Positions 5,027-43,016 of a stretch of 64,000 nucleotides of DNA are shown here, piece after piece; position 1 is the first letter of the stretch; every line of letters starts with the position of its first letter. Below the pieces are notes generated by a model. That model ran no database searches. It had not been told where the DNA came from and saw only the letters and a list, made by a program, of their open reading frames with translations. This stretch comes from Convolutriloba macropyga (taxonomy: Eukaryota), in NCBI RefSeq assembly GCF_964194025.1, contig NC_134478.1, positions 53,010,001 to 53,074,000 of the forward strand. Direction: 5' to 3'. The position numbers were made by a program, and so were the translations under genes.

Positions 5027-5330
5027 TTTTTGCTCCATAAACACAGTGTGCTGCAGTGACCACCCACTGCGATGACACAATAGTACCTCCACAAGCTTCT
5101 GTATATGTACGACTTCGCCAAGTATACACCTGGACATAGAACCTCCGCCTCGGACTCAAGTGACCTCCTAAGATGTTAAAGGTCAAGGCAGATCTAAGTC
5201 GTGACTTCTGTTCAGTCCTCCTCTCATCGAGATTAAATGTTTGATCATTTTCTTTTCTGATGAATTGGAATCCCCGACAAAATACTAAAATTGCAGTGAT
5301 CAATAAAGAGAATAATGTTAGATTGGTCAT
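5027..5330 (-). CDS. Trypsin-like (S1A) serine protease, first coding exon: signal peptide, propeptide and catalytic His region
   Basis: MTNLTLFSLLITAILVFCRG signal peptide; ILGG mature N-terminus; CGGTIVSSQWVVTAAHC motif. Ends at a phase-1 GTTAGT donor (5026). No intact Asp or GDSGG exon was found downstream. Confidence 0.8.
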
Positions 5331-8469: not shown

Positions 8470-9540
8470 CCCAGGTTGAGGTGCCCTCTGGAAGTGGCCT
8501 CTGATCAGACCGTGCCAGACGAAAGCAACCTCTGATCAGACCATTCTAGACCAAAGTGTCCACTGATCAAGCTGACGTGCGTTTGAAACACCGTGATTGC
8601 TCGGAGTGCGCTCGAAGTTGTCTTATATCAGACCTTGCCAGACGGAAATGGCCTCTGATCAGACCGAAATCAGATCATTGTCCAGGTGATTGTGCGACCA
8701 CCATTGCGCAGACGATTATGCGCTCAAAATTACATCTGATCAGACTATTTTGCGCTCGAAAATCACTCCTGATCCTACTATTGTGCGCTCGAAATCGCCT
8801 CTTATCAGACTCAATTGCGTCCAAAATTGTCTTATGAGTGAATAGTTTTCACTATGAACGAATCTCTTTAATTTTTCTGTAAAACATTTAATTAATAGAA
8901 ATAATGTTTGCAGTACGAAATTCGTCTGAGGAAAAACCAATTGTAAAAGTATTGCTAATGGAAATGGAACCTATCTGTTGAGGAAACAAATTACTTGTTT
9001 CCATTAGAGCATATTTCTGACTCAATGGATGAACTTATACAGCTTTCAAATAGAAACATCGTGGGCTTCAGTTAATCAAAATTGCCTCTTAATATGACAG
9101 GAGTTTGGTATCAGCTGGAACCCTTTGGTTCTGATCAGAGGCAGAAGACTCTAGATGTGCCTCTGATCGGAAAAATGATTTTTGTTGCCTCTCGGCAGAG
9201 CCAATCTCTTATTAAAAAATACAAAAATTGAAAGAAAAAAATGCGCTCGAAATGGCCTCTGGTCAGACCCAATTGCGCTCAAAATCTTCTCTGATCAGAC
9301 TAATGCGCGCTTGAACCCGCCTCTGATCAGACCAACCGAGACGGAAATGACCTCTGATCAGACCATTACCATTCGGAAGTGACGTCTGATCAGACCATCC
9401 CCAGACCGAAGTGACTTCTGATAATACTGAAGCGCGCTCGAACCAAATCCCAGACCCTGTAATTTTGGTCTAGAAACACACAGTGTGCGTTGGAATTGGG
9501 TCTGATCAGAGGTCACTTCCGTCTCGCGCCTCAACCTGGG
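8470..9540. mobile_element. Non-autonomous EnSpm/CACTA(CMC)-like DNA transposon, copy 1
   Basis: Terminal inverted repeats CCCAGGTTGAGG...CCTCAACCTGGG and many subterminal CTCTGATCAGAC repeats; collinear with 41892-42849. Confidence 0.8.
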
Positions 9541-9584
9541 TATAGAAACTGAAAGAGAAAACTGTTTAATTACACTTTAAATAA

Positions 9585-9954: not shown

Positions 9955-10070
9955 CTATTTTGTGCAAATATGATTGGTAGTGTCACAAGAAGTGTCTTTG
10001 GGACAACATGTCTTCTTATCAGCACAACAGACTGCACCCTCCAATGGACAACACATCTCACCACTTCGAC
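9955..10070 (-). CDS. GRN: Progranulin-like exon 6 (C-part of granulin 3, stop)
   Basis: gttgtag|(G)RSGEMCCPLEGAVCCADKKTCCPKDTSCDTTNHICTK*. Not present in the ORF track. Confidence 0.95.
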
Positions 10071-13000
10071 CTACAACACATTAAACCATGCAGTTCATCT
10101 ACCTTAATTTACACCTCGAATTTCAACAAAATCACTCACATTTCATCAATAAGAATTTGCGAGATTCGTGCAACATTTTTACGACATCTTGCAAGATTAG
10201 CATACGAACCCGACTCGGGTATTAATGACTAAAGTTGCATACCTTCCGCGTCCTATCAAAATTTCTTACCAAGTATTTCGTAATTTACCAAGTCACGTAT
10301 TAATACTTTCATCAATGATATTTGACATTTTGTTTGGTACAAAACCAAAGGCATCTTTTCCATTTGTGACCCCCCCCTCAAGCTTAATGGGTGCATATTT
10401 ATTGCACCCTCAGACGCACGTGCCATATTTTTACATGATGATTTACTATGTAATGCCGCGTGCTCTGTAACTGGAAACACCAAGATCCTTCATATTTCAT
10501 TATTCCAACACTATCAATTTGCAGATCTATTCTGCTCCCCCCCCGCCAGCTTAGTGGGCATACATTTTTTACGATACCCAGGCGCACATGTTCATTTTTA
10601 AAATTTTTAGTAACGTGCTATATAACAAATATATAAATGGCAATTTGACTTGGCAAGCAAGATTTAAATGTAAGACCGCGAACAGTAATCACAAGCATTA
10701 CCCACATTTGTTGAAAAATTTTGACAATTACGAATTCTTACTTTTCGAAATGTTCCAAAGCACCAATATACAAGAGAAATGAAACTCTCCTCCGAACGAC
10801 GCTTTTTTACATTGCCCCGCTAAAATGAAAAAATGGGACTAATTTATTTTCAAAGCAGTCCAATTGAGTAAGAAAAAACTTATGGAGGCCTCCTCTAGAT
10901 CAACTGATTGAGCATTTTGAACCAAACCCTTTCCTTGAACCTAATTGAGACTTATTAAACTACAATCATCAAATAAAATCGTCAAAAAGAAGACCTATTA
11001 CATGCTATTATTAAGTATGAACAGGCTCGGGTGAGCAAAATTGGACTAGCAAGACTAATAAAAAATTAATGCCTATTTTTTAAGAGAAGTTAGTGAAAAT
11101 AGAGTTTAGGAATAATAACTTCAAGAATGATTTTCCGATAAACTTTGAACAAGATGTCAATAAAGATCAATTTTTTGATGAAATAAAGAAGCAGCTCCCA
11201 CATTTAAAAATTGAAAATAATCCACATTAAAATAAATATATCCCATTTACTCAACAAATCCAAATATGGACATTAGCTTATCTCCAGATTTCAAAACAGG
11301 TAATTGGGGGTGCTAGGACAATAGATCGAAAGACAACAGATCGAAAGCAAAAATTGGGACATTAGATCGAAAATTAAATTATTCAGGTTGCATCTTGGTC
11401 AATCAGATTTGAGCGCTCATTTATTAACAGCGGCGCTAGTGACAATGGCAGACGTACCAAAATATAGAAAGTTTATTGCTGGCCAATCACAGCCCAGAAA
11501 ATGGCAATATTGTTTTCTGATTGGCTGATTGCTCAACAAGTTCTCAATGTTTTAAAATAGGATATGAGCGTTAACGTAAAACTGCTCAGAAATTGCGAAA
11601 CGACGAAAAGGCCAAATTATACGTATTTTGTGGGAAACTGGTCTCACGTTCGTTTGCGATAGATTCATCTCCGTTGCCATTGATACTCTAATTTGGGAAT
11701 TTCAGAAAAATAAAAACATTCAAAATAATTTGACTTCGCAAGCAAGGTTTAAATGTAAGACCGCAAACAGGGCTCACAAGCAGCACCCACAATTGTTGAC
11801 AAATTTTGAAAATTACGATTTCTTTTTTTTCAAATTGTTCCAAAGCACCAATATACAGATGAAATAAAGCTCTTCTCCAAAAGACGATTTTTTACATTGC
11901 CCCGTTCAAATGAAAAATTGGGACTACTTTGACTTCAAAGCAGTTCAGTTGAGTAAGAAAAAACTTATGGTGGCCTCCTCTGGACCATCTAATTAGGCAA
12001 TTTAAATCAAACTCTTTACTTGAACCTAATTGATACTTATTAATCTACAATAATCAAATAAATTTATCAAAAAGAAGAACTATTACAAGCTATTATCAAT
12101 TATGATCTGGCTCGGGTGAGCAAATTTGGACTAGCAAGACTAATAAAAAATTAATGCCTTTTTCTTAAGAGAAGTTAGTGAAAATAAAGTTTGAGAATAA
12201 AAATTTAAAGCATGATTTTCTGACAAATTTTGAACAGAATGTCAAAAATGATAAATTGTTTGAGGAAAAAAAGATACGTCTCCCACATTTACAATTTGAA
12301 ACCAATCCAAATTAAAATAAGTAAATCCCATTTACTCAACAAAAACCAAATATGGACACTAGCTCATCTCCAGATTTGAAAAAAGGTATTTGGGTGAACT
12401 AGGACAATAGATCGAAAGACAACAGATCGAACGCGAAAATTGGGACATTGGATCGAAAATTAAATTATTCAAGTTGCATCTTGGCCGATCAGATTTGAGC
12501 GCTCATTTGTTAACAGCGGCACTAGTGAAAATGGCAGACGTACCAAAATATAGAAATCTTATTGCTGGCCAGTCACAATTGAGAAAATGAGAACATTGTT
12601 TTCTGATTGGCTGATTGCTCAACAAATTCTCAATGTTTTAAAATAGGATATTAGCGTTAACGTAAAACTGCTCAGAAATTGCGATAAGCCGAAAAAACAA
12701 AATTATAATTTTTTGGGGGAAAACTGATCTCACGTTTGGTTGTGATAGATTCCTATCAAGTCCCACGGGCCGCTGAGGCATGACCATGGCCCGCGAGGCA
12801 TGGCCAGATGCGGTAAAATATATAATCTAGCCTTAGGCTATGTCCAATTTGGGCTAATTGAACACTTAAAAGTACAGTGTTTTAAATTTCTCAACAATCG
12901 CATTCGTTGAAATTTCTACATATTATAGCATATAATACAGCATATATTCCAGCATATAACATGTTCTGTTGTGATATTTTGTTCGGTTGTGATAGATTAA

Positions 13001-16000
13001 TACACAAGTCCCACGGGCCGCTAAGGCATGGCCATGGCTCCCGAGGCATTGCCATAATTTCGTAAATATATTGCAGCTCGCAAATAATGCTTAATTTCAA
13101 CTAGTAAGAACAGAGAATAATTTTCGATCTATTGTCCCAATTTTTCTGTTTTTGATCTGTAGTTCTTTCGGTCTATTGTCCAGTCACCGTATTTGGGAGC
13201 TTTCAGTATAATCCGAGGTTAAAAAATCTAAATCGGAGCAAACAGCAGATCAAACTGAGTCTTAATATCAAATGAGTATAAAACTATAAAAACTATTAAT
13301 TTTTATTACCCTTTTACCTATTGCTCTCCATTTTTATTTTCTTTTATATGGAAGTAACTTTTTTAAAGTGCATCATTTAAAATTTTTGTGGCTCTTCGAA
13401 GAGCTGAGGGATGGCTTGTTTCAATTTAATGTTTCACTCACCAATGAGGATATGTCAAAAAAGAAAGTATTGCACATGTTTGGAAAAAGACAGTAATCAA
13501 ACTGGAAATGTTTTATAAAAGTAACGGGAGAGATTTCTCTTTAAAGGTCTCTACATTTTTTGTCCAACATTAATGGAGTTTCCTGTATTAAGGCAGTGAG
13601 TTTAGAATAAGAGAACTTTTAAATTGAAGCTAAACGGTATTTTCTAGAAAGACGCCACAACAATATCATATTTAAAAGATGAGATGAGTAATAGTTTGAC
13701 CAAAATTTAAGTTCCGCTAGAGACAGGTGATAACCAATAAAATGGAATATAAAAATAGTAAGTTATTTATAAATATCAGATAACAAATGCATCGGATATA
13801 CATTTGGAAACCTTTCCTAGCGCGTGTATATGACTAATATGACCGTCTTCCTACTCAAGCAATCCATTTCAAAATGAGCATTACAAATAATTAAATGAAA
13901 TTCGAATGCTATGAAGCTCCAGAATTTTTTCCTTTGTGTCCCCAGAACGTTTTGCACCTCCAGTTACCCAGTCCGGGTCAAAATAGAGCAAATCATTCTA
14001 GCAAATGTAAAAATCTGGCACGTGGGGGGGGGGGGGGTTGGAAATAATAGGCGGCAATAGCTTGGGTGCACAAGCGGAACACTGAAACTACAATTTTAAC
14101 TATCAGCTGAGCGAAACCCGCAAACATTCTAAACATGAAGCTTTTTGCGCCCTCAAAATATCAAACTGATGGACGTGAACTTAGCACTTAAGCGGTGATG
14201 AAAGCCCGTGGCTTCCACACTAATCAAGAATTTAGGAACACTTTGAATCACAGTTCAAAAATTTTGTATAAAAAGACAAAATTTGGAAGCTAGATTTAAA
14301 ATTGTGTGTATAAACATAATCCGAGATTTAAAAATCATACTCCTTTAGCCATTTTTGTAACGGCAACGGCTCTTGTAATGTGGTTATTGACAGCAATGTT
14401 CCAAAATATCTGTTATAATTGGACTAATAGTTAGTTATGCTCGTACTCGGGCTAAAGATGACGTGCTTGACAATGTATTGACAACAGTTGAGGAGATAAA
14501 CAACCTGATAATGGATGTTTGACCTGTTCTGAACAGGAGAAAAAAGAACACAAGTTATCATTGCAGAGGAAACATTGACTGAAAGGAATAACGGAAAAGA
14601 TTCAAAAAATTTTTTGGTCTTGGAAGAGAAAATAATCTGCAAACATCCATTTGAAAAATCTTCAAAACCTTAAAATGATTTTTTCCACAGAATCACGTCG
14701 CTTATACTTTTAAATAATTAATGTAAGAAATTCCATAAATTGGTAAGAATTGCACCATTGGCTAATTATACCTGGGCAGCAAGTGTACCCATCATGACAA
14801 TAAACAACAGGGTTACTGTGACATGCCACAGCGCTAGCTTTCGCCTCCCCACTCATTCCAAGACTCCCTCCGTACCCATACTCTGTGAACCCCCCACTTC
14901 CACCACTCTTCGGGCTGGCTCTTTTTCCAGACATGGAATTGGCTAGTTGGTAGGGTTTGTACGCGTATTTGCCCGATGGTGTCTCAACATGGCGGTGGAG
15001 ATTGTCGTTGTCGTGAGGGTTCCTAGCAACCTCGGCTTGTTCGGCTGAAATATTCTCTCAATCAATTCTCTATAACTTAATCATGCTTCGTAATTTTTAG
15101 CAGGAATGCTAAATTTGTTCTGATTAAATAGATATTTTCAGAAAAAAGGAAGGCTCTTTGAAATAAATGAAATAGATAAAATGTAGATGATTAAAGATTG
15201 AACAGCTCAACAAAATGGAAGTTATGTATAGTCAATAAAGGTTTTATTATTGATATTATTTCCAAATACACAAGCGAAGGCAAAATAACAGCCTTCTTAG
15301 GGAAGACAGGACGAACATAATTTTGTAATTAAACCCAAAACAGCTAAAAACAAGTTTATTGTGTCCTTTCTACGCACAGAACTCTGTGTTGTGTAAAAGA
15401 GGAGAGAACAATGTGAAGCTGCCTGTGAGGACGAGCTCTCACTTAATTTAAAATGCCCATCGACTTAATGAACAATAAAGAGGTGACAGTCAAACAAAAA
15501 GAGCAATTCTGCTTCTGAAAAGAGCAGTCTGGATGACATTTGGGAGATAATAATTGGGAAAAGACGACAGCTGATATCCGGCTGCTGTTCCACTACGATT
15601 AAGCATTAGTATAAACTCTTGTTTTTACCCAGTGCATCCCCCGCTGTTAACCCAAAGCTAATCCCCCGAAACGGCCGATTCTACAGAAGGAAAATCACTT
15701 TGACATGACAAACAAATTTTTTAACAATTAGAATGAATCAGTGAAAAGTCACCCAGAGTACGGGAGTTCTATCAACTAATCAGGATTAGTGACCTTAGTC
15801 AGTCCTCGGGTGACGCTGCCAGCGCAGTCTAGAGAAATACAAACCCAGTAACAATAGAGACGATTTGGAAAATTTTTGAACCAACTAACAGACACACACA
15901 ATGCAAAACTAGGAAGCATTGGGATAATCTAAGGAAAAAAAGAGAAAAAGTGCAAATTTCAAATGATCACCTCAAAATTGATTCTGCGTGAAACGCCAAA

Positions 16001-25000: not shown

Positions 25001-28000
25001 ATAATAACTGGTTTTAAAAAATTGAAATTCTCTGTTGAGCAAAACCGAAGTTTGATTTTTTTTTCAAATGACTTATTGATTTCTAACTAGAGAATGGCAA
25101 ATCTCGGAAGTCTTTCCTGTCTTTAAATTTCAAATTTTTTAGCCCATTTTCCTTCTACCTAAAATTCTCTTTTGCCCGATTTTAGTGATTAATCTTTTGT
25201 TTAAACATATAGTTTACACTAGGAACGTCTTCATAATTTTTATTTCCACTGATCGATTTTTTGGATACTATAACAAATTAGAACAGCTGTCTGGAAATTG
25301 AACTTCTGAAGTTATTTTGAAACAAACTGATTATTGTTTTGTTTACTAAAGGGGAACTAAACAAGAAAAAAGCTCGGGCCATTTTACGAGTTCCTGAGCT
25401 CATCTTATAATAGTAGCAGTTTTGTGTTGTTGAAAAATCCTCAATTCTTTTTAACATCGCCGCAATGTAATTTCAAACAAAACATTTTGCAGAAAGTTAT
25501 TTCTGACTGGGGTGACAGACCAGCGAATGCTTAGCTGTTTTATTATGTTTAAAAATCACCACCTCAAAAATTGCAAATGATAACCATGCCGTCTAAATAA
25601 GTATTCAAGCTACAAAGTATTTTCACGAGCCAGTGTTTGTTATAGTGGTGAGCGCGCGAAGGAAAGCGAGTTCAAGTTTTATTCGAATTTGGAAATATTC
25701 GTCAACATTGTTCACAAAAGCTGCGTTGTAATTTACTTTCAAAAAAGACGGCAAGTATCCTATGGTTTAATTTGCGGCCGTATAGATTAGTTAGCTTGAA
25801 TCTGTTATTTAAGGCTATTTTTAAAAGTCCTCGCAAATTTTCCCCGTTTGATATTCGTGTCTCAGAAATTGTTGCAAAATATCCAAAAAACAGAGCGTAT
25901 TAGAAAACTGCGAGGAAAGAATGGAAAAATATACTTTGAAACCTGTGATGCGTCTTAAATAATTTGTATTCTTCAGCAGTAAACCAAGTTAAAGTCCCAG
26001 ACGGGATCAAGTATTACAAAACTGAAGATCAACTCGCGAGGCGAGTCATATGTTCAAAAGTACATACTCTGGAAACAATGAAAAACGCATGAAAATCTGG
26101 ACATCAACTTAGACACTGTTTCCTCGAGGCACGGTAGAAAGAGAGAATTAACTGGCTCTTTCAGTCCAGACCCTAGATCCTGGACACCAGACCTCTGCAG
26201 ACACAATATTATAATCCTCATCGCTGTACTTTTGCGGAAATAAGTTGGGACTAAACGCTCTATCCCCACTTCAAGTAATTGAAGGAGGGTATATAGTTTT
26301 TTGCTTTTCGCAGAAGATTAGCTGACCAGAATGTCTTATTAGCGAAGGAAGAAGTTGATTGAAAAGTTTTGATCACAGATTGGGAGGATATTAGACTTAC
26401 GAAGTGGATTGTTTGGTGTGGTGCCTTTAGAACATACAGTGGCACCTGAGGGTGATTGGGCACAAGAGTATCCTGAAGGGCAGCAACTCTTCTCATCAGA
26501 ACAACAGACAGCATTTGACACACCACAGTACCCATAGTACTCCCCATTTGCATTGTGGCAACACCTACACATTTATATTTCTTTAAATCGAAATGTCGAT
26601 ATTTCTATTTTCATGACTCCAGTGGAAGCACAATCAACCGAAATTTTTCAAAATAATTCTACCCAGAAAGTTCTACCACACTTGAGTACAAAATATTTTA
26701 AAACGTTTTGGTACGGGTCTGGTTCCACTGGAGTCATAAAACTGATGGACAAAACTCATAATTAGGGTTGAAATATCCTATGCAATTTAGTCAAAGTACC
26801 ACTTCAAAAAATCCAGAACCAGGGACCAAAGCGACAAATCTTGAGAAGGAAATAAACAAACTTTCGGTAATAAAATATAATAAAAGTAGATTACTGATTT
26901 TAATCAACCATAGATACGTACAAAGCCATACACTGAACAGTCAGATCTGTTCGGAAAAAAATTCTCTACACGAAGGTTGAACGACTTTTATTCAGACATT
27001 TTTAACATCAATTAAGGCAAGTAGTTTCTCTTCTTACAAAAGCTGTCGTTCTTAAAATAGCTTTCCGTAATATGCAACGTTAAGGAAAGTGATTAAAAAT
27101 TTCAATTAGCTAATTGGCTCACAATAGGTTTATTTGGAGGCACCTCGACCGCAGTTGGCAAAATTTATATAAAGTATATAGTAAATCTATTTTTATTTTT
27201 CAATTTTTTAGTAGCAAAACATGATGAGAAACAGTATGATCAGAATTGAGTTGTTGAGTTATGCAAGTCGTAGTTTTTTTTACGCATTAAAGCGTTTCAT
27301 TTACTAATGGAACATTGAAACAATAAAGCCAGCAGCAGAAACGAAAAAAAAAATAAAAAGTGTTTAAGTGAGTCTGCACTTAATATTCCAGCCCATCAAA
27401 CAAACAATTTGAAAAGACAAACTAATTTATCCCCGATGTGAATCTTGAGTAATGCATTGAACTTGGTTATAATTGTCCCCAATGAGGCATCTGAAAGTTA
27501 AATATAAATTTAAAATAGTTGGTCATAGTAGTACAAAAACTATGGAACTAGAGTGTCTAAGCGGTCTAAAGTAACATTGAATCATTCAACAGAAAGCTTG
27601 TGGAAATATTTGCTCAACAAAAAAGATTGAGGTTCTTAGGTAGTCAAAGATAAGTTTTTCGATTAAGTAAAGACTAATGAGATTCAGATTTGGAAGAAAA
27701 ATTTGTAGTCTCAGACGCGTAGAGAAACGAAATGGAACTTTGATTAAAAAATGGTCCATTACCTGGAAGGTTATAAAAAACTAAGCAATTTTATCGGTTA
27801 GATTGACAAACAAGCCCAAACAAAAGATTGCTATGGGTTTTTTAAGGGGTCGCAGAAAATATATGGCATTAATACACAAAAGCGTTAAATCACAAAATCC
27901 ACAAGAATTGAGCAGGAGCTTTCTCTGCTGAGTGACGTAACTTATAATAACCAAAAAAGCGGGTGATCCCCCAACAGTAAGGAGATGTGCCTGGATGAGG

Positions 28001-31000
28001 AGTTTCACCTTGGTCTTTTGGTTTTCCCCTGTTGGAACTGGTCGCCACCGCTCTGGTACTGCTCTCAACGATATTACACTATTTGCGTGAACAAGGCCTG
28101 AGTGCAACGGCAAGGAGACATGAGGACGGCTACACTGCAAGTGACAAGTTAGTAAACATTGATTTGACTCAACAATGCGTTATTTTGCGGTGACTGTTCT
28201 AGCGTAAGCACCCTAAAAGGGTCAAATTTGCATAAGAACACATCTTGTTTTGGTCACAGTCCGTTTTCCCAAGAGAAAATTTAGGAACTGTTGTAAACTC
28301 TTCCTATCTGAATTCAGCAAAAAATTGGAGGCTGAGACTCCAAACTAACTGTTTTACTCTTAGACGACAGATGCACACACTCGGCCGCAATCTCTTGACT
28401 TGCTTGACTCATTCGTCAGAGTAATAATCCAGTTCATGTACCTACGCTGCGTGGTTGGTTAAACAGCGCATTGAAGGAGCTGTTTTAACGCGTTTTAAAC
28501 CGCCTGCTTAGAGTTCATAATATGGACACGCACGTTTGAAAAAAATGCATTTGAATTAAGAGTTGAAACGATATTTAACAGTGCATGCGCCTCATCATTA
28601 ACGGGTGCATGCGACTGTTTTGCGTTAACGTTGTCTCTTTCTATTTCGCCCTGGCGTGAAATGATATGACAATCTGCCCAGTGGGAGGTGGATGATTAAA
28701 GCGCATTGCACCAACTTTCACAACTTGAGAAAACAAAAAGTTAGTTGGTGCAAATTTAAAAAAAGACAAATTTAAAAAAAGTTTTTTTTCTAAACTGGGA
28801 GAAGCGGTCTTTAATCCATTTCGTCTAATATAAACCAAGTTTCAGCCGCAATCGAATAGACCCACTCAATTTGCCAAATTTCTTTGTCAGTTTAGAGAAA
28901 TTTCAATTTTTCCAACATTAATGACGTTTTTTCAAGGAAAAACCCAAAAACCATAAAAGGATTATATCAAGCCTTTCGAGTCATAAGGATTAGCTGCCCT
29001 AATTTGTTTCTCATTCGGACCCCAGTGCAAAGTTCGTACGAGTGCATTCCGAAAAAAGGCACCCAGTAAAGTTTCAGGTAAGAATTATATCGTAAAGCTA
29101 AGCGGCAGGGCGCCTATCCCGCTGACACTTTGTGATTAATCATCACTTGCGCGCGCCATCACCAGGCATTGCACTATTTCGCAAAGTTTTCACCTCTGCC
29201 ATTGTATGTATGAGCTTCTGGCTCCGCAACAATTGGCGCAGATCAATTTCAGCATTTTGAAATCAGCGCTCAATTATTTCAAGTATATGTCGCATGAATC
29301 TGCTCGATGTCTCTGAGAAATTGGGCGCGCCGAAAATTTTGTTTTACACATAAAAAACTTGGAGATGGACTCTGGGGTGGTCTCCTAGCAGCCTTTTATT
29401 TAACATTACCACTCGCAGGTTCAGGTCAGAAAACCGTCATGGTTTATTCTCATTCTGACTTGTTGGTCTCTAAGTGAGAATTTCGAAGTGGTTTCAGCTG
29501 AGAGCCACGTGACCCTGCTTGTAAAACACGCAACTTTTCAGTATGGAGACGATGATAGTTAATTAGCTCGTGCTATTGTTTTAATTAGGGTTTTTGTCAG
29601 CAATCTAAAAGATTCTTCGAAGACCAGACAAAGTTTTTTTCTTCAGTTTGATTTAAAAAGTTGTCTCGAAAAGCTTTGAGTTTCAATTTTCGGATCTATT
29701 CTTGGTCCCAACCCCCCAAGTTTAGTAGGCATATAACTTTTATGGGTCTAGGAAGTAAACCCCCACGGAAAATAACCCCCACGGAAAATAACCCCCACGG
29801 AAATAAACCCCCCACGGAAATAAACCCCCATTTTAAAATTGAATTTTGGTCGTGATAATTTGTTCGGTTGTGATAGTTTCATATCAAGTCCCACGGGCCG
29901 CTGAGGCAATGCCATGGCTCACGAGGCATGGCCAAACGCGCTAAATGCGCAGCTCTTTAATAGTAAAGTGGGGGTTTGTTCCCGTGGGGTTTATTTCCTA
30001 TCTAAAATGAAGTGGGTTTTTTCCGTGGGTTTTTTTCCGCAACCGAACTTTTACACCCATAGGCGCACGTGCTATTTTTATACATAATAACGTGTTGTAT
30101 AACAACAACACATATTTTCCAACTGGCCGTCATAAAAAACACAGAAGCGGGCGGGGAGAAGGGTGGGGACAGAACAAATCCCAATGTTTTTGTAGTGAAC
30201 AACTTGGCCTCTCAACTAACGTAGCAGTCTCGGGGCAACATCCCGCAAAGGTATCTGTTCCGTTAGAAGAGCCAGAGCCAGTGTCGTAGCAGCACTTCTC
30301 TCCAGACTCACAGGTCCCAGACTTGTCCAGTTCACACGTCACAGAGTCATTGCCCGCCTTGTACGGGTTCAGTTTCGAGATTTGGGGGTTTCTCGGGTGC
30401 AGTTTTTGGGCCAGTACAATTTTCAATGGGGTCAAATCTGTAAACAGAACCCGGGTCGAGGTGTCACCGCTAAAAATCGCTAAAAATGTAAGATTTGCGG
30501 TCAATTTGAGTGAAAGTGTAAGATTTGCGTTCAATGCGATGAATGCGGTGAAGAAAAACATATAAGCGGTGAAAAATTTTTTCTCACCGCTTAAGCGGTG
30601 AAAGAAAATTTTTCACCGCTACCAGCAGAATGCGGTGAAAAAAAATTTTCAGCGCTACCAGCAGAATGCGGTGAAAAAAAAATTTCACCGCTATCAGCAG
30701 AAGGCGTTAAAAAAAATTTTCACCGCGCTAATTTCAACGCTTATCATAAATTCAAAGGAAATATAATTGAAGTCAGCGACAGATGGCGCAGTGGTATAAG
30801 AAGTGGTTGACATGCACGAGGTGAGAAGCTCGAACTAGCGTACGTCAGTTTCTTCTTTGTAAGAAACCCGGTTAATGCGGTGAAAAAAAAAATTTCGCGC
30901 TAAAAACCGCAAAAATTCACCGCATTCAACGCTAAAAGATGCGGGCGCTTTGCGATGAATTTTTTTCACCGCTATCGCCACTAATCTTATATTATTTTTT

Positions 31001-37000: not shown

Positions 37001-40000
37001 ATTTTCCGGATTTCGATGCCCAAGCATTGATGTATCCCGGCCCTGGTGCTCTGCTGTTGTCTAGATGTGTCAATAACTTTATAGATTTCCCTCAAAGTAA
37101 AAGGTCTAAAGTAAAACTCTTGAAATTTCCGCTCTATTTTTTTGACGTTCAAGGGAACAATCTGCCCTCTGTAGATGCCCATTTCAATGAAAACTCGTTA
37201 AAAGTTGTTGCATATTGATTTTTTGTCTTTCGTTTTTCTTACCATTTTCAACAATTTCAGCGATGTCTGGACTGTTGTTATTCATTCCAATTTTTTTAAT
37301 GAAATTCCATTTCTCTTTTGACAGATTCAAAGAAACTCTCTCCTCTGGTCATTTGATCCGCACGCAAAACCATAGAATAGCTTCTAGCAGCCACCAACTC
37401 CATACAGTAACCATTAATAAAGTGTCGCTCAACGCTTTCGACGATAAACGATACATTCTTGACAATGGGATCGACACGCTGCCGTTTGGTCATAAATATT
37501 GTCCACGATCGTTTCTTCGACTGAGACGACAATTTCGACAATGAATCGCTTAGTTTCTGGTCGTCTGTGGAGTTGCACGAAATTGAAAACCAGAGGGAAA
37601 TTGAAACCACAGTCGAAGCGAATACTGACAACGCTGAAATTCCTGACCCCGGCTTTGTAAGAACCGCCGCAATCAGAGAGTTTGATATTCATTCTGATGA
37701 AATTGCCGACAAAAATGAGATAGAAGAAGAACATCCAGTGTATAACCCATTTATTGATTATGAAGCGATAGAATCAGACTCTTAATTAACAAAAGAAAGC
37801 GATATTTTCTATTCAATTGGACGCTTTTGTACATGTTTAATTCTCTTATCTATAACAGTTTCTATAACAATTCTATTCTATATGTTAAAACGTAAAAATT
37901 CAGCTTTAATTCAAATCTGATTTGCTAGGTTTTGCCACAAATAAGCAAGACAAGTTAAAACTGGAATGGCTTTCCAAAAGCGCAATACCAACAATAAGCC
38001 GCCAGACAAATACATGTAGCGCAATTACCACTTTCTTAACAAAAAAGATCCCCCCTAGGGGATCAGGGATCCCCCTCTGCCGAACGGAACTCGAAAGGTG
38101 CTCCCCCCGATCTTCCTGTATATATACGATACTACTGCTGACGCTATTTTTACCTTGCTAATAAAATTTTTTAAAAATTGAACAAAATTTTTTTTGTAAT
38201 TGATGTTTGTTGTTATTTTTGTTTGATTTTGTTGTTCGTCTTGACTTGCTTTCTTAAAAATGACTGCTCTCATCAGTCTTATGGCATTTTTACTAGGCTG
38301 AGCTATCTGCGTTGGAGGCGATCTTTTTGTTCACACATTTAAAAAAAATACTTTTGGGGCTCTCTATCTATTCCTCATTTGGTAGACATTTATGCCGAAG
38401 ACGTGGATGAGTGGGGTGAGAACTTCATGTGCGAACGCACAGTACCGAGCATCCTTGATAAAGTTAAAGATAAGCATCATCCCTTGAACCGTAATACAAA
38501 CAGCTACTAGCAGTGTTAAAACACCATTTCTATCTTGCTCCGAGAAAAGTTGCTTATAATACTTTCACAAGGGTCAAATATAAGTTTGAAGATGAAAAAC
38601 TTCAAAATGACGCAGGAAAATTTGAAACCACAGAAATTATAGCGTCGTTGCTTTTTAACAGTCAGGAGAAAATATCTCTAAAAATAATTGCAAAAAAATC
38701 TTTTTATTATTTTATAAGCTTTTCATCAGAGTCCACGAAGTGGGATACAAATCAGAGTCGACGAAGAGGGATACAAATTACGCGTTTTTGACAAACGATG
38801 TACTCGAAATTTATAAATTTGCAGCTTGAGACAAAGGCAAGAATCCCCAAAAATCCAGTTGATGGCTCACAAACGGCCTAGCATTAATAATAAAGAAACT
38901 AGACTAAAAAACAATTTTTTAAAAAAGAATTCATTGTGTTTTACCATCCCCGTAGCGGTCACTGTTTTTTAAGCAGAATGACTTGGATAAACATTCAGAA
39001 TCTTTTTAAAAGGCCAGATGCAGACATTTTTTCCGAATGGCAAAGCGTTTTTATCAGCCTAAGCAGCGTCTTCTGTGGAGTTTTCATAGTGGAAACATCC
39101 CGTCAGAAATCACAATGGATAAAATTGTTCCAGGCGTTCCTAATCAATTCGCTCGGTGAATTGATTAGGAACGGGAATGGTAACTTTCCAGGTTTTCTCA
39201 ACCGGAATTAGCGCAATTCTATTCACTGGGAAAGCTTGTGCCAAGTTTTCGGAAATGTTCGATGAGTTAAAAGAACAAGTTTTGTGAAATATGCATGTTT
39301 AGTCCTAAATTAGGTAATAACGAGCAAATATTGAAATGCGAACATGCAACTTGAGTCTGATCATGGTTGGGTCATGGATGGGCTATCGTGGAGAGGTCTT
39401 ATTATGACTACAATTTGTCGCCCAAAAAATTATGTAAGAGGTCACGGGGCGTCTCTAAAACTACCCCCATTTACATTTTTAATTTTGAGTCAGCACGCTA
39501 GTAAGGAAAGATTTTACATTCTTTTGCAGGATTTTGCCTTCTTCAAAACTAAAGTCATGTCATCACAAGAGTTACAAGAGTTAGAATCGATGAAAATAGT
39601 AGAAAAAGGCGGACGAATTTCTCCTCTTTTCAACCATAGAACCAGCGGCAGAAAATAAAAATTCGGAGAAGATGAAGGTGAAATAACAAAGGAAGAAAAA
39701 TGAATTAAAATGTATTTAAAATTGAATTTCACCTCCAGAATATCAAGTGTGGTATTCTTACCCTCTTGCTCGATCTCTCTCTTCCTTCTTGTCTGCTTCT
39801 CAGAGCTATCCTTTTGGCAGAATGGAGCTTTGTCCACACACTTGTGACCCTGAGGACAACAGTAGGCCTGTACAATTGGGGAGTCAGAACAGCACACTGC
39901 ATTGGGGTGTGCACAACATCCGTAACTGCCTTTGAATTGTGGAATGGGACAACAGGTGCTCGTGTTTTGACAGTAATTCTAACCAGCAAAACTTTTCTTT

Positions 40001-43000
40001 TTATTGAGTTAGATCGACAACAGAAAAAAAATTATTATAAACTTTCCCAAATCTATATTACCAAGATTAGTTGCACCTAGGTCCCACCTAGGTGCATTTT
40101 ATGCATAGCAGCGTGCTATATAACAGAACCTAAATTGCAAGAGGTGGGGTTATAAAAGACAATACCAGGTGCCGAAACATAATTGGTCGACATTCTCAGT
40201 GAAACTTGATAGATCTTGACAACACAAGAACCTATTAGTTGATAAGTTGCACGCTAAGAAACAAAAAGAAAAAACTTTCTTTCACTGAGTTAAGTTATCG
40301 AAAAATCACACTAAAAGTTGTTACTCTCTAAGATCGAATCCTTCCACGCGACCCCACAAAAAGCGTGGTAGTCTGATTTGAGAGGCAGGTTTCAACACTG
40401 AGCCCAGAAAAAGATCCCTATCGTGAGATAGTCTTCGAATCAGAGGTCTGAGGGGGCGGGGGTCATAAGTCATTTCAATCATTCGATCAACCAATCGGAC
40501 CTACCTCAGATTTCGATTTGAACCTCTGGTCCCAAACCAACCGTCAGCAAAACAAAATCTTAAGGTAACATTTTCATCAGTACCCGCTTCAGTATAGCAA
40601 AAAGTTCATTTCAATGAAGCTTGTAAATCTTAAGATTGTAAATCTTACTTTCATTGATGCTACAATTAATGACAAAATCTTCAGAAAGAAAGCCGGAATA
40701 ATTTTTAATTCAGAACACTTACTTTTTCTCCTAAGCAGGGTAGTGGAAAAAGTTTTCAATATTTTGTTTCCGGAAATATTTTTACATAAGGACTTTGACC
40801 TTTTCTAGAAACGGATCGAAAAAATTGGATAAAACTGAAATTAGTTTATAGTTTGGAACCGCTTTCTCATTTTCAAAAGATTTGGAAGAATTGAAAATTT
40901 ATTGGCGCTTCCAAAAAATGAAAATTGACAAAGATTCTATTAAGCACATTGACAACAGGAGGTACAAAATGCACGCAAAACAAGTCACACGATAAATGGC
41001 TATTGCAAGAAAATATCAGCTGAACGTTCTCTAGAAAAAAATATGCGTCAATTCTATAAGCTGATCTTGCAACTCATTTTGAATATAATGCTTCTGGAAT
41101 TTCGTTTTGCAATGTTTTTCATTTGTTTAAAGAAGGGCCCCCAAGAGGTCTCGCTGGTTCGAACATTTTGGAACATCGTCGTCGTTTAAAAACAGATAAA
41201 TCAAGTCGCTTTCAATTGCTTAACTTCGAGTGGTTCAGAAAAAGACAATTGCGCTCCTCTCAGATTCTCGACAAAACACTAAACCTCTACGTACACGCAT
41301 ACAAATACAGACCTTTTAAAACCTATAATTGCTTGAAACTGAAAAATTCAAAAAATATTATTTGTCACTTTCGTGGGAGTACACATTTGCTAATACTTTT
41401 TTTCTTCAGGAAATATACCAGTGAAGTTTTTAACCGTTTCGTCAATCGATGCTCATTTTTTCCTTAAGTTTAAGCGTTGGCATGACTTACTGATGAAATC
41501 ATTGAATAGAATGACCAGAATTTATTTAAAATGACAGGATAAGGAGAAATAAGACCACCTATTAGAAAATAAAAGATTAAAAAAACATACTTCAAAATAG
41601 TATTATCTTAATTCATAAGAGATCGAGGAAGATGTGTGTTTAAGGAATTATTTCCTCTCTCAAAATGTCTAAAAGCAACCAACCTGTAAAAACTCGATTG
41701 AAAGAAAATTGAATAAAGCAGAAAAATAAGTAAGATATATAATTGAAGAAACGCAATAATCAATAGGCAATTATAAAAAAAAATCATACACAAGATAAGC
41801 GTCGTAAATTCTAACACAAAAATAATTTTCACATGACTTCCCTTTGTATCACAATCTTTAGACCAAAAACTCATGAAACTTTATTAAGCTTCCGAGGTTG
41901 AGGTGCTATCCGGAACTGACCTCTGACCAGACCGTGCCAGACGAAAGTAACCTCTGACCAGACGATCCCAGACCAAAGAATTCTCTGATCAGACTAAAGT
42001 GCGCTCAAAACACCGTGTGCGCTCGAAATTATCTCTGATCAGACTTTTCCAGACGGAAATGACCTCTGATCAGACCGAAATTAGACCATTGTCCAGACGA
42101 TTGTGCGACCATGGCCCAGACCGAACCTAGACCATCGTCCAGACTATTGTGCGCTCAAAATCACTTCTGATCAGACTACTGTGCGCTCAAAAGTCACTCC
42201 TGATCAGACTAGTAAGCGCTCGAAATCACCTTTGATCAGACTCATTTGCGCTCAAAATAGTCTGGTCATTGAATGGTTTTCACTATGAACGAATTTCTTT
42301 AATTTTGTTATAATATATTTATTTCATAAAAATTGATGTTTGCGTTATTAAATTCATCTAAAGAAAAGGACATTCTAAAAGTATTGCTGAAGAAAAGAAA
42401 TCCCAACTGCTGAGAAAAAATTTATTTAGTATACCATTAGTGCATATTTCGATTAACTCAATGGATGAATTAAGACTGCTTTCCATATAAAACGTCGTTC
42501 TCTACCCTTAAACAAAATTTCTTTTTAAGGGGACCGGCATTTTCTATCAGCTGGACGCAAACCATTAGACTCTAGATGAGTCTGTGATCATAATGATGCT
42601 TTTTGTTGCCTCTTGGAAGAGCTAACATCTCTCCAATGAGACCCGATTCCGCTGAAAATCTTCCCTGATCAGACTAATGTGCGCTTGAATCCGCCTCTGA
42701 TCATACCATCCCCAGACCAAAGTGACCTCTGATCATACTATTGTGCTCTCGAACCAAATCCAGACCCTGTAATTCTGGTCTGGAAACACACCGTGTGCGT
42801 TGGACTTGGTCTGATCAGAGGTCACTTCCAGATGGCGCCGCAACCTGGGTTATAAAAATCGAATATTAGGAACAAAACAAGGAAAAGATTAAAAGAAAAG
42901 TTTGCCTGGTCAGGACACAAAATGACGTTGGGTTGTCTGAACACCTCAATAGCTGTCCCTTTTGATATGTAACACACATAAACTGTAAGTAGTAGATTTA

Positions 43001-43016
43001 TAATCTTCAAATACAT
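9955..43016 (-). CDS. GRN: Progranulin-like secreted protein, 6 exons, 365 aa; complement(join(9955..10070,14772..15044,26401..26564,30221..30437,39762..39978,42906..43016))
   Basis: Exon lengths 111+217+217+164+273+116 = 1098 nt; intron phases 0,1,2,1,1 all match. Spliced product has a signal peptide and three granulin modules (CC-doublet pattern, AVCC.D...CCP motifs) and ends at TAG. Confidence 0.92.
10643..12752 (+). repeat. Local tandem duplication, unit about 1.09 kb (about 10643-11665 and 11729-12752)
   Basis: Collinear from atttgactt.gcaagcaag.tttaaatgtaagaccgc to ctcacgtt.g.t.g.gatagattc. The ORF track shows parallel QARFKCKTAN spurious ORFs. Confidence 0.9.
12395..13188. mobile_element. 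MULE-like MITE with GACAATAGATCGAAA subterminal repeats
   Basis: Inverted ends (gg)tgaactaggacaatagatcg / ctattgtccagtcacc; 9-bp TSD GTATTTGGG at 12386-12394 and 13189-13197. A truncated duplicate starts at 11309. Confidence 0.75.
14772..15044 (-). CDS. GRN: Progranulin-like exon 5 (long linker with GKR and N-part of granulin 3)
   Basis: tttcag|(P)EQAEVARNPH...NSMSGKRASPK...AVACHSNPVVYCHDGYTCCP, then G|GTATAA donor. Confidence 0.9.
19755..20050 (+). pseudogene. Decayed copy of uncharacterised HDAGG...(A/G)PGY protein (copy 1)
   Basis: FRLHAVLHDAGGHLKRRHNIAPGYIYSSPCCSCFNNPYLGHVSSLLY*; premature stops relative to copy 2. Confidence 0.65.
20223..20535. repeat. Perfect 32-bp-arm hairpin followed by about three 98-bp tandem repeats
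   Basis: Arms 20223-20254 and 20261-20292 are exact reverse complements around an A6 loop; atattgacac recurs at 20261, 20359 and 20457. Confidence 0.95.
20681..21173 (+). pseudogene. Frameshifted copy of uncharacterised HDAGG...GPGY protein (copy 2)
   Basis: MNCSAG...KFP N-part, broken by frameshifts and stops in A-runs, then an open C-part FRFHAVLHDAGGHLKRRHNIGPGYIYASSCCSCCNNPYLGHVSGLIYCLSAKLFCKSYRKLQL*. A third N-terminal remnant (MNCAACKTELFSSKFL) starts near 21756. Confidence 0.65.
22006..23240 (+). repeat. Direct repeat B (about 1.2 kb), second copy 24446-25657
   Basis: Both start aaacctctcaatggcaagaaagg and end gtggtgagcgcgc; nearly identical over most of their length. Confidence 0.95.
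23241..24100 (+). mobile_element. 5' fragment of Gypsy-like LTR retrotransposon (LTR about 23241-23656, PBS about 23658, decayed gag)
   Basis: Begins TGTTACG; ends ...ttaata followed by TGGTGCCG (PBS-like). Downstream frames give PFEPTEQW..., AIIVG and LSQGKITL pieces resembling a Gypsy gag N-terminus. Confidence 0.55.
24446..25657 (+). repeat. Direct repeat B' (copy of 22006-23240)
   Basis: As for 22006-23240. Confidence 0.95.
26401..26564 (-). CDS. GRN: Progranulin-like exon 4 (C-part of extended granulin 2)
   Basis: gtgtag|G then CCHNANGEYYGYCGVSNAVCCSDEKSCCPSGYSCAQSPSGATVCSKGTTPNNPL, then C|GTAAGT donor. Confidence 0.95.
29744..30045. mobile_element. MULE-like MITE with GGAAATAAACCCCCAC subterminal repeats
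   Basis: Inverted tandem-repeat arms; near-perfect 9-bp TSD AACTTTTAT/AACTTTTAC; inserted into another short repeat. Confidence 0.75.
30221..30437 (-). CDS. GRN: Progranulin-like exon 3 (linker and N-part of extended granulin 2)
   Basis: tttacag|(D)LTPLKIVLAQKL...VTCELDKSGTCESGEKCCYDTGSGSSNGTDTFAGCCPETA, then AC|GTTAGT donor. Confidence 0.9.
30450..31019. mobile_element. EnSpm/CACTA-like MITE with CACCGC/GCGGTG repeats
   Basis: Termini CCCGGGTCGAGG...CCTCGAGTCGGG flanked by aa on both sides; dense inverted tcaccgc/gcggtga motifs. Confidence 0.65.
30776..30850 (+). mobile_element. Degenerate tRNA-derived (Pol III A/B box) segment inside the MITE
   Basis: TGGCGCAGTGGT A-box and GCTCGAACT B-box-like motif at tRNA-like spacing; no intact cloverleaf seen. 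Confidence 0.4.
33958..35398 (+). repeat. Direct repeat A (about 1.44 kb), second copy 38137-39576
   Basis: Collinear from gctgac..tattt to catcacaagagttaca, with scattered substitutions. Confidence 0.93.
35400..37320 (-). mobile_element. 5'-truncated, frameshifted LINE (CR1/L2-like) ORF2 reverse transcriptase remnant
   Basis: RAPGPG, NYRPVS, QFGF, LDLAKAF, GVPQG..LGP, FADD and YLGVQID motifs across ORFs 36133-37182. Confidence 0.92.
37317..38136 (+). mobile_element. Right-hand end of a Polinton/Maverick: decayed protein-primed DNA polymerase B C-terminus and terminal ACTACT
   Basis: NKVSLNAFDDKRYILDNGIDTLPFGH is the characteristic Polinton polB C-terminal motif. After a frameshift and stop an acidic tail (PDPGF...NPFIDYEA) follows. 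The element ends tatatacgatACTACT (AGTAGT on the other strand) at 38136. Confidence 0.85.
38137..39576 (+). repeat. Direct repeat A' (copy of 33958-35398)
   Basis: As for 33958-35398; begins exactly after the Polinton ACTACT terminus. Confidence 0.93.
39762..39978 (-). CDS. GRN: Progranulin-like exon 2 (granulin 1 and RRKR)
   Basis: ggttag|NYCQNTSTCCPIPQFKGSYGCCAHPNAVCCSDSPIVQAYCCPQGHKCVDKAPFCQKDSSEKQTRRKREIEQE, then G|GTAAGA donor. Confidence 0.95.
41892..42849. mobile_element. Non-autonomous EnSpm/CACTA(CMC)-like DNA transposon, copy 2
   Basis: CCGAGGTTGAGG...CAACCTGGG flanked by TT on both sides; CTCTGATCAGAC repeats; homologous to 8470-9540. Confidence 0.8.
42906..43016 (-). CDS. GRN: Progranulin-like exon 1 (signal peptide and Cys1 of granulin 1)
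   Basis: MYLKIINLLLTVYVCYISKGTAIEVFRQPNVILCPDQ; donor CAG|GCAAAC (GC), phase 0. Confidence 0.8.

Follow-up and report, generated by a model that had tools for sequence, protein, structure and literature searches.

How could a granulin module come to carry 15 cysteines (Cys), when the canonical module has 12? The question is raised by a progranulin-like gene of the acoel Convolutriloba macropyga, which lies on the minus strand of positions 53010001 to 53074000 of contig NC_134478.1 (this whole stretch of 64,000 bases is called the window here, and coordinates are window positions unless stated otherwise). To our knowledge, progranulin has not been described from acoels. Six exons were read from the genomic DNA and then joined by script, the exon ends being placed by splice signals and phase, and together they form one open frame of 311 codons in which all five junctions keep phase (0, 1, 2, 1 and 1). 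In the predicted protein a hydrophobic N-terminus is followed by three Cys-rich modules, and the linker after module 1 contains an RRKR motif; the hallmarks of progranulins (signal peptide, several granulin modules, cleavable linkers) are all present in it. The overall gene model is considered probable, and the product is probably a secreted multi-module progranulin-like precursor, with signal cleavage and processing predicted. Regarding module 2 of this secreted three-module protein, we lean, with moderate confidence, towards an exon-level fusion, in which an N-type half-module encoded by exon 3 has been joined to a truncated module encoded by exon 4.

The unit produced by joining exon 3 to exon 4 comprises 83 residues with 15 Cys, from TGT at 30336-30334 through TGT at 26434-26432. 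A script run on the spliced sequence returned the formula C-x7-C-x5-CC-x16-CC-x5-CC-x9-YC-x6-CC-x5-CC-x5-C-x9-C and the successive Cys spacings 7, 5, 0, 16, 0, 5, 0, 10, 6, 0, 5, 0, 5 and 9. Exon 3 ends with ...GCT AC/GTTAGT at 30221 and exon 4 starts with tgtgtag/G TGT TGC at 26564, the codon split by the junction being ACG (Thr). DNA reading and script thus agree to the base with the original prediction as to the formula, the coordinates, the GTTAGT donor and the letters of the phase-2 junction. The predicted NGT glycosylation sequon in a long Gly/Ser loop was also found, at 30264-30256 in a 16-residue Gly/Ser-rich loop between the first and second doublets of exon 3, whose six Cys fall within 38 residues. 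Modules 1 and 3, which had been called canonical, each contain 12 Cys in the joined frame: module 1 reads C-x5-C-x5-CC-x10-CC-x6-CC-x9-CC-x5-C-x6-C (given a GC-AG intron 1, as discussed below) and module 3 reads C-x7-C-x5-CC-x7-CC-x6-CC-x5-CC-x5-C-x6-C, both ordinary granulins. The composite unit departs from the 12-Cys order C, C, CC, CC, CC, CC, C, C and reads C, C, CC, CC, CC, (Y)C, CC, CC, C, C. It has six doublet positions versus the canonical four, which is two additional positions and not the one extra hairpin that had been proposed.

One doublet position reads Tyr-Cys (TAC TGT at 26530-26525), as had been noted, and the Cys count is odd; at least one of the 15 Cys must therefore be unpaired within the module. 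Contigs from four DNA runs of three samples, all belonging to one study, probably including the source of the assembly itself and not amounting to independent biology, span both exons (including 26380-26613) and show no difference at 26528-26530. Since TAC is identical across these runs and samples, it is not an assembly slip. The sole exon 4 variant in the DNA contigs is 26447 T>G (TCA>TCC, Ser, synonymous), and exon 3 shows 30375 T>C, a Lys>Glu change in its Cys-free linker. One alternate haplotype carries three indels in the intron just downstream of exon 3 and none in the exon.

The family of exon 4 is established, and the Cys pattern does not arise by chance. Its peptide was aligned to the Pfam Granulin model (PF00396) with 37.3 bits (cut-off 20.9), residues 1-36 falling on model positions 2-36 of 42, whereas the same model places the first CC of exon 2 on positions 2-3 and the first CC of exon 6 on positions 12-13. 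Because of these model positions, the first CC of exon 4 corresponds to the Cys III-IV doublet and its YC to the second doublet. A phmmer search against solved structures placed residues 1-36 on positions 17-51 of human granulin C, with GYC opposite GCC (E 3.7e-5), and gave equivalent alignments to human granulin A and zebrafish granulin AaE. Aligned beside exon 4, the genome's three other granulin modules all have Cys where exon 4 has its Tyr, at what is also the Cys V column of the solved granulins. By these alignments exon 4 is Cys III to XII of an ordinary module in which Tyr has taken the place of Cys V. Its AlphaFold 2 (AF2) model has a predicted local distance difference test score (pLDDT) of 75, and the five best matches in the PDB are all granulins (6CKU, 1G26, 1QGM, 1I8Y and 2JYE), with non-significant E-values of 0.5-3.7. 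A six-frame scan of the whole 1,175,981,408-base assembly with Pfam Granulin gave just four places, three of them in the window on the minus strand (39817-39957, 26456-26563, where exon 4 scores 36.3 bits, and 9961-10080) and the fourth on another chromosome.

The N-type exon has been defined as encoding the first six Cys of the granulin motif (Palfree et al., PMC4527844). Exon 3, which is single-copy in the genome, agrees with this definition: it carries six Cys in the order C, C, CC, CC on one exon and ends five residues past the last doublet. The second doublet has the G-CC-P context that is usual in the family, and the only oddity of the exon is its inter-doublet loop of 16 residues versus 7-10 in the other modules of the gene. 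Exon 3 would accordingly be a normal exon of the N-type half-module kind that supplies Cys I, II, III-IV and V-VI, and only the length of its loop, which could be glycosylated, would be unusual. Its AF2 model (pLDDT 66.5) shows one long hairpin between the two doublets, and the only two PDB matches of this model are zebrafish granulin AaE (6CKU) and the N-terminal subdomain of human granulin A (1G26), with non-significant E-values of 4-6.

Several observations weigh against the fusion, most of them concerning exon 3. The granulin hidden Markov model, which the original prediction had proposed as a check, recognised exon 4 and gave no Pfam match for exon 3, and exon 3 was likewise without a granulin match among PDB sequences and Atlas features; its assignment is drawn from Cys spacing and a weak fold match. 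In an exhaustive HMMER search of 1.84 billion cluster representatives, no orthologue of exon 3 and no spliced protein was found, the only true match being the raw genomic open reading frame (ORF) P0001. Of the other hits of this search, P0002, a repeat protein unlike granulins, is spurious, and P0003 (4511 residues, E 5e-4) was classed as spurious without inspection. A word-index search with a 160-residue frame scored on exon 3 alone returned only P0001 (the length limit of 280 residues hides proteins of ~311 residues), the corresponding search with exon 4 returned no candidate under the same upper limit, and a two-row alignment query meant for a wider length range, still of 160 residues, again returned only P0001. 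The GTTAGT donor of exon 3 is only moderate. Read runs were searched with the exon 3-intron-exon 4 stretch and with the last exon and its 3' flank, and all runs obtained were of DNA, although missing RNA rows do not amount to silence and public RNA-seq data for C. macropyga exist (PMC13650328, PMC12849515). The exon 3 and exon 4 peptides were also folded as two chains (ipSAE 0.02), a result that has no bearing either way.

As to the origin of the unit, the exon 3 half-module would be spliced in frame, five residues after its last doublet, to exon 4, which would represent Cys III-XII of a second module without an exon for its own Cys I and II and with Cys V changed to Tyr. The most economical history that we can infer is the loss of an intervening coding block made up of the C-terminal half of the first module, the linker, and Cys I and II of the second module; because both splice sites are in phase 2, loss of this block keeps the frame. 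The loss of Cys I and II would have left Cys III and Cys V of the second module without their native partners, and one of the two would later have been replaced, giving the Tyr. The original prediction had derived the same protein from a different history, namely an ordinary 12-Cys module that grew longer when one of its hairpin units (C-x5-CC-loop) was duplicated in tandem. C-ESGEK-CC and C-PETAT-CC are both of the form C-x5-CC, each is followed by a loop ending in Gly or Tyr before a Cys, and periodic ladders are able to grow by unit duplication. The two units, however, show no residual likeness (score 21, versus 24 +/- 7 for shuffles with the Cys held fixed) and their DNA is unlike, a duplicated unit would straddle the intron, and no internal insertion is needed when the whole length of exon 4 matches Cys III-XII of a normal module and exon 3 alone makes a complete N-terminal half. 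Duplication is rather unlikely on these grounds.

The fusion requires that the junction 30221^26564 be used, which we judge likely from the splice signals. The 5' frame of exon 3 is set by the phase-1 donor of exon 2 (G/GTAAGA) and the strong acceptor ttctgtttacag at 30449-30438, which has no phase-1 competitor within the open frame of exon 3. Skipping of exon 3 would break the frame because the exon is 217 nt long. At the other end, the AG at 26566-26565 is the only acceptor that brings in the first CC of exon 4, because an in-frame TAA (26575-26573) lies just upstream. Phase-2 GT sites were scored from the exon 3 acceptor to beyond the next stop; among 11 such sites the donor TAC/GTTAGT at 30221 is the best, with 6/9 consensus positions, the others reaching at most 5. 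One of these others, GAA/GTGCTG with its last exon base at 30296, would be in phase 2 with exactly canonical spacing, giving a module of ordinary length with 11 Cys (C-x7-C-x5-CC-x9-YC-...) and making the 75 bases between the two donors either intron or an alternative extension. The site matches only 4/9 consensus positions versus 6/9 for 30221. The 75 bases that it would remove stay open and encode CC-x16-CC-x5 with the G-CC-P context, which is very unlikely for an intron, and the alternate haplotype mentioned above has no indel within them and three in the intron just downstream. That the junction at 30221 is wrong, or one of several, is therefore quite improbable.

Intron 3 was also considered as the place of a missing piece. 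The original prediction had conceded that an extra exon between 26565 and 30220 could restore two ordinary modules; a Cys-pattern regular expression and tblastn with all five exon peptides detected no granulin-like coding remnant on either strand of the intron, nor were an N run or another long ORF of note seen there. As no granulin remnant is present, two ordinary modules cannot be restored from intron 3.

A further explanation is that exon 3 or the whole gene does not work, either because the gene is decaying or unexpressed or because another exon stands before exon 4 in the mRNA. The DNA-only outcome of the run searches with exons 3-4 and with the last exon and 3' flank would fit such a gene, as would the lack of an exon 3 homologue among the cluster representatives. 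All six exons are nevertheless open and in phase, 39 of the 40 Cys of the six-exon model sit in granulin positions, exon 3 is required for the frame between exons 2 and 4, and the absence of RNA rows is no demonstration of silence. Concerning a missed exon, a C-x4-C-x5 candidate was noted upstream at 34791-34754, which agrees with the phases only if read as a micro-exon of 22 bases (~34776-34755) that could supply C-x5 in phase; it was rejected, the pattern occurring by chance 12-14 times per strand in the window. A non-working exon 3 or gene is, on balance, unlikely.

If the fusion is accepted, its disulfides can be considered. The ladder of a full granulin is completed by the bonds VIII-XI and X-XII. 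The bonds that precede them are I-III, II-V, IV-VII and VI-IX, and six-Cys halves are able to fold alone with I-III, II-V and IV-VI (PMC7463432). The positions of the fused unit were numbered L1-L16, with L9 = Tyr; the unit can be numbered as one ladder because the bonding rule, from the second Cys of any doublet k to the first of doublet k+2, repeats periodically. A one-ladder topology would contain L1-L3, L2-L5, L4-L7, L8-L11, L10-L13, L12-L15 and L14-L16, and L6 (the second Cys before PETAT) would be alone because its partner L9 is Tyr. With a mini-granulin followed by a truncated module, L4-L6 would form in place of L4-L7, leaving L7, the Cys that directly follows PETAT, alone. Either topology would give seven disulfides and one spare Cys adjoining the five-residue PETAT spacer. 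The spare Cys would either flank this spacer or stand second in the first doublet, and it would be free or engaged in an intermolecular or inter-module bond. It is unlikely, though worth stating, that the unit is a true single domain, i.e., an elongated granulin ladder with six doublet positions in which one rung (VI-IX type) has been opened by the Cys->Tyr change, with a reactive thiol near the PETAT turn. If this were true, the thiol could join two molecules of the acoel progranulin covalently or attach the protein to a partner, and the granulin hairpin stack would be modularly extendable in the manner of a repeat protein. The tetrabasic RRKR (39775-39786, minus strand) lies in the linker after module 1, whereas the linker after module 2 has no dibasic site. 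With RRKR in linker 1 only, a furin-like cut of the precursor would leave the 15-Cys unit joined to module 3.

The Cys parity of the whole protein depends on the choice of intron 1. This intron probably starts with GC (CAG/GCAAAC, at 42904-42906 on the minus strand), a donor that was preferred because it is the only one to give C-x5-C-x5-CC (C-PDQNY-C-QNTST-CC) in module 1. Two alternative GT donors lie upstream within exon 1 (GAG/GTGTTC and AAC/GTCATT), and either of them leads to a module 1 without Cys I and with 11 Cys. The secreted protein contains 39 Cys (12+15+12) under the GC-AG intron 1 and 38 under the GT alternatives, so that an odd count for the whole protein is uncertain. Under a GT intron 1, the spare Cys of module 1 could pair with that of module 2.

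Compared with canonical granulins (PF00396; human granulin C 2JYT, human granulin A 2JYE and zebrafish AaE 6CKU), exon 4 has the same CC spacing (x9-10/x6/x5/x5), the same AVCC and CCP-G-x-x-C motifs and, at its end, the same two single Cys. The unit differs from them in having 15 Cys and six doublet positions versus 12 and four, in the Tyr of the Cys V column, and in the replacement of its own Cys I and II by an extra N-terminal half. With the paragranulin or N-type half-module of 'mini-granulin' fold (mammalian paragranulin, zebrafish Grn1 paragranulin; PMC4527844, PMC7463432), exon 3 shares the order C, C, CC, CC on one exon, and such halves are self-folding; known paragranulins have a Cys-free linker before the next module, whereas only five residues separate the C. 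macropyga half from the next doublet. The lamprey short forms p-g" and the g-p forms of fish Grn1/2 (Table 2 of PMC4527844) likewise have a half-module beside a full or N-terminally reduced module. In these one-and-a-half-module proteins the units are separate, with short intermodule sequence, whereas the C. macropyga halves abut in ladder register. The lamprey g" module is without the first double Cys, while the module of exon 4 is without Cys I, II and V. Variable Cys number is known from the 10-Cys granulin G of tetrapods, from 5-Cys half-modules and from a granulin variant in plant proteases (PMC4527844, PMC7463432); these are reductions or a plant-specific variant, whereas the C. macropyga unit is extended. 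A non-exhaustive literature search found no description of an extended granulin with 15 or 16 positions or of a granulin with an odd Cys number.

Apart from a few reduced forms, the granulin module is regarded as a fixed unit of 12 Cys, and the fused unit would be a departure from this. If a half-module has been welded to a truncated module, the periodic disulfide ladder tolerates in-register extension through exon loss, which bears on the evolution of modules by shuffling of N-, C- and CN-type exons as well as on efforts to design stable peptides from granulins. If one Cys of the secreted protein is left over, covalent dimers or thiol-dependent retention would be predicted. The surprise is modest, as variation in Cys number is already known in the family and the unit is read from a gene model.

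Table 1. Features of the progranulin-like gene in the window.
Feature	Position	Strand	Content and signals
Exon 1	42906..43016	-	ATG, signal-like peptide, Cys I of module 1 (..ILCPDQ); donor CAG/GCAAAC, probable GC-AG intron
Exon 2	39762..39978	-	Cys II-XII of module 1 and linker with RRKR; donor G/GTAAGA, phase 1; Pfam Granulin 33.5 bits
Exon 3	30221..30437	-	Linker, then putative N-type half-module C-x7-C-x5-CC-x16-CC-PETA(T); acceptor phase 1, donor TAC/GTTAGT, phase 2
Exon 3, Cys-rich part	30336-30221	-	Read from DNA
NGT glycosylation sequon	30256..30264	-	In the Gly/Ser-rich loop (16 residues) that separates the two doublets of exon 3
Alternative phase-2 donor	30294..30298 (last exon base 30296)	-	GAA/GTGCTG, 4/9 consensus; would give an ordinary-spaced 11-Cys module
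Intron 3	26565..30220	-	3656 bases; high-copy repeat at ~29644-30187
Exon 4	26401..26564	-	Cys III-XII equivalent CC-x9-YC-x6-CC-x5-CC-x5-C-x9-C and start of linker; acceptor phase 2, donor C/GTAAGT, phase 1
TAC (Tyr)	26528..26530	-	Cys V column in the three other granulin modules of the genome and in solved granulins
Exon 5	14772..14882	-	Linker and Cys I-IV of module 3; acceptor ttcacag, phase 1; donor G/GTATAA, phase 1
Exon 6	9955..10070	-	Cys V-XII of module 3; stop TAG at 9957-9955; Pfam Granulin 42.8 bits

The element at 29644-30187 in intron 3 is present in very high copy number, with a summed contig depth of up to ~500,000 versus ~50 in its flanks; at 29751-29831 it contains GGAAAATAACCCCCAC-like units of 16 bases in tandem, which have an inverted partner at 29965-29998. 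Palindromic repeats of 28-36 bases (AAGCGGTGAAA..TTTTCACCGCT) are arranged in tandem at 30563-30673 in intron 2, just upstream of exon 3. A sequence of ~50 bases (cccaggttg.gcgc....ggaagtgacctctgatcagacc) occurs in near-identical form at 9490-9541 and 42800-42850 (minus strand), one copy lying just beyond the 3' end of the gene and the other in intron 1, and the 3' flank (~9100-9540) is packed with ggtctgatcagag repeats. The near-identical copies and the repeats of the 3' flank probably represent a small family of mobile elements.

The only other granulin exon of the genome (40.7 bits) belongs to a locus at G000:C7:62652195-62658625 on the minus strand of another chromosome; saposin exons share its strand, the nearest of them a few hundred bases upstream of it. 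The order at this locus is SapA-like plus SapB_1, SapB_2, SapB_1, SapB_2 and then granulin Cys V-XII (loci L001, L010 and L011), the second SapB_1 match being the sole significant one in the whole genome; an N run lies just downstream. From this arrangement the locus looks like a natural prosaposin-granulin fusion gene. In mammals, progranulin and prosaposin are partners that bind one another for exit from the endoplasmic reticulum and lysosomal delivery (PMC8689666), which makes such a fusion notable. Within the window, a short stop-interrupted frame on the plus strand at 5028-5123 (..NTVCCSDHP..) is weakly similar to the granulin AVCCSD core (tblastn E 0.04-0.08); it may be a chance match or what is left of a decayed granulin, ~5 kb past the 3' end of the gene and on the other strand.

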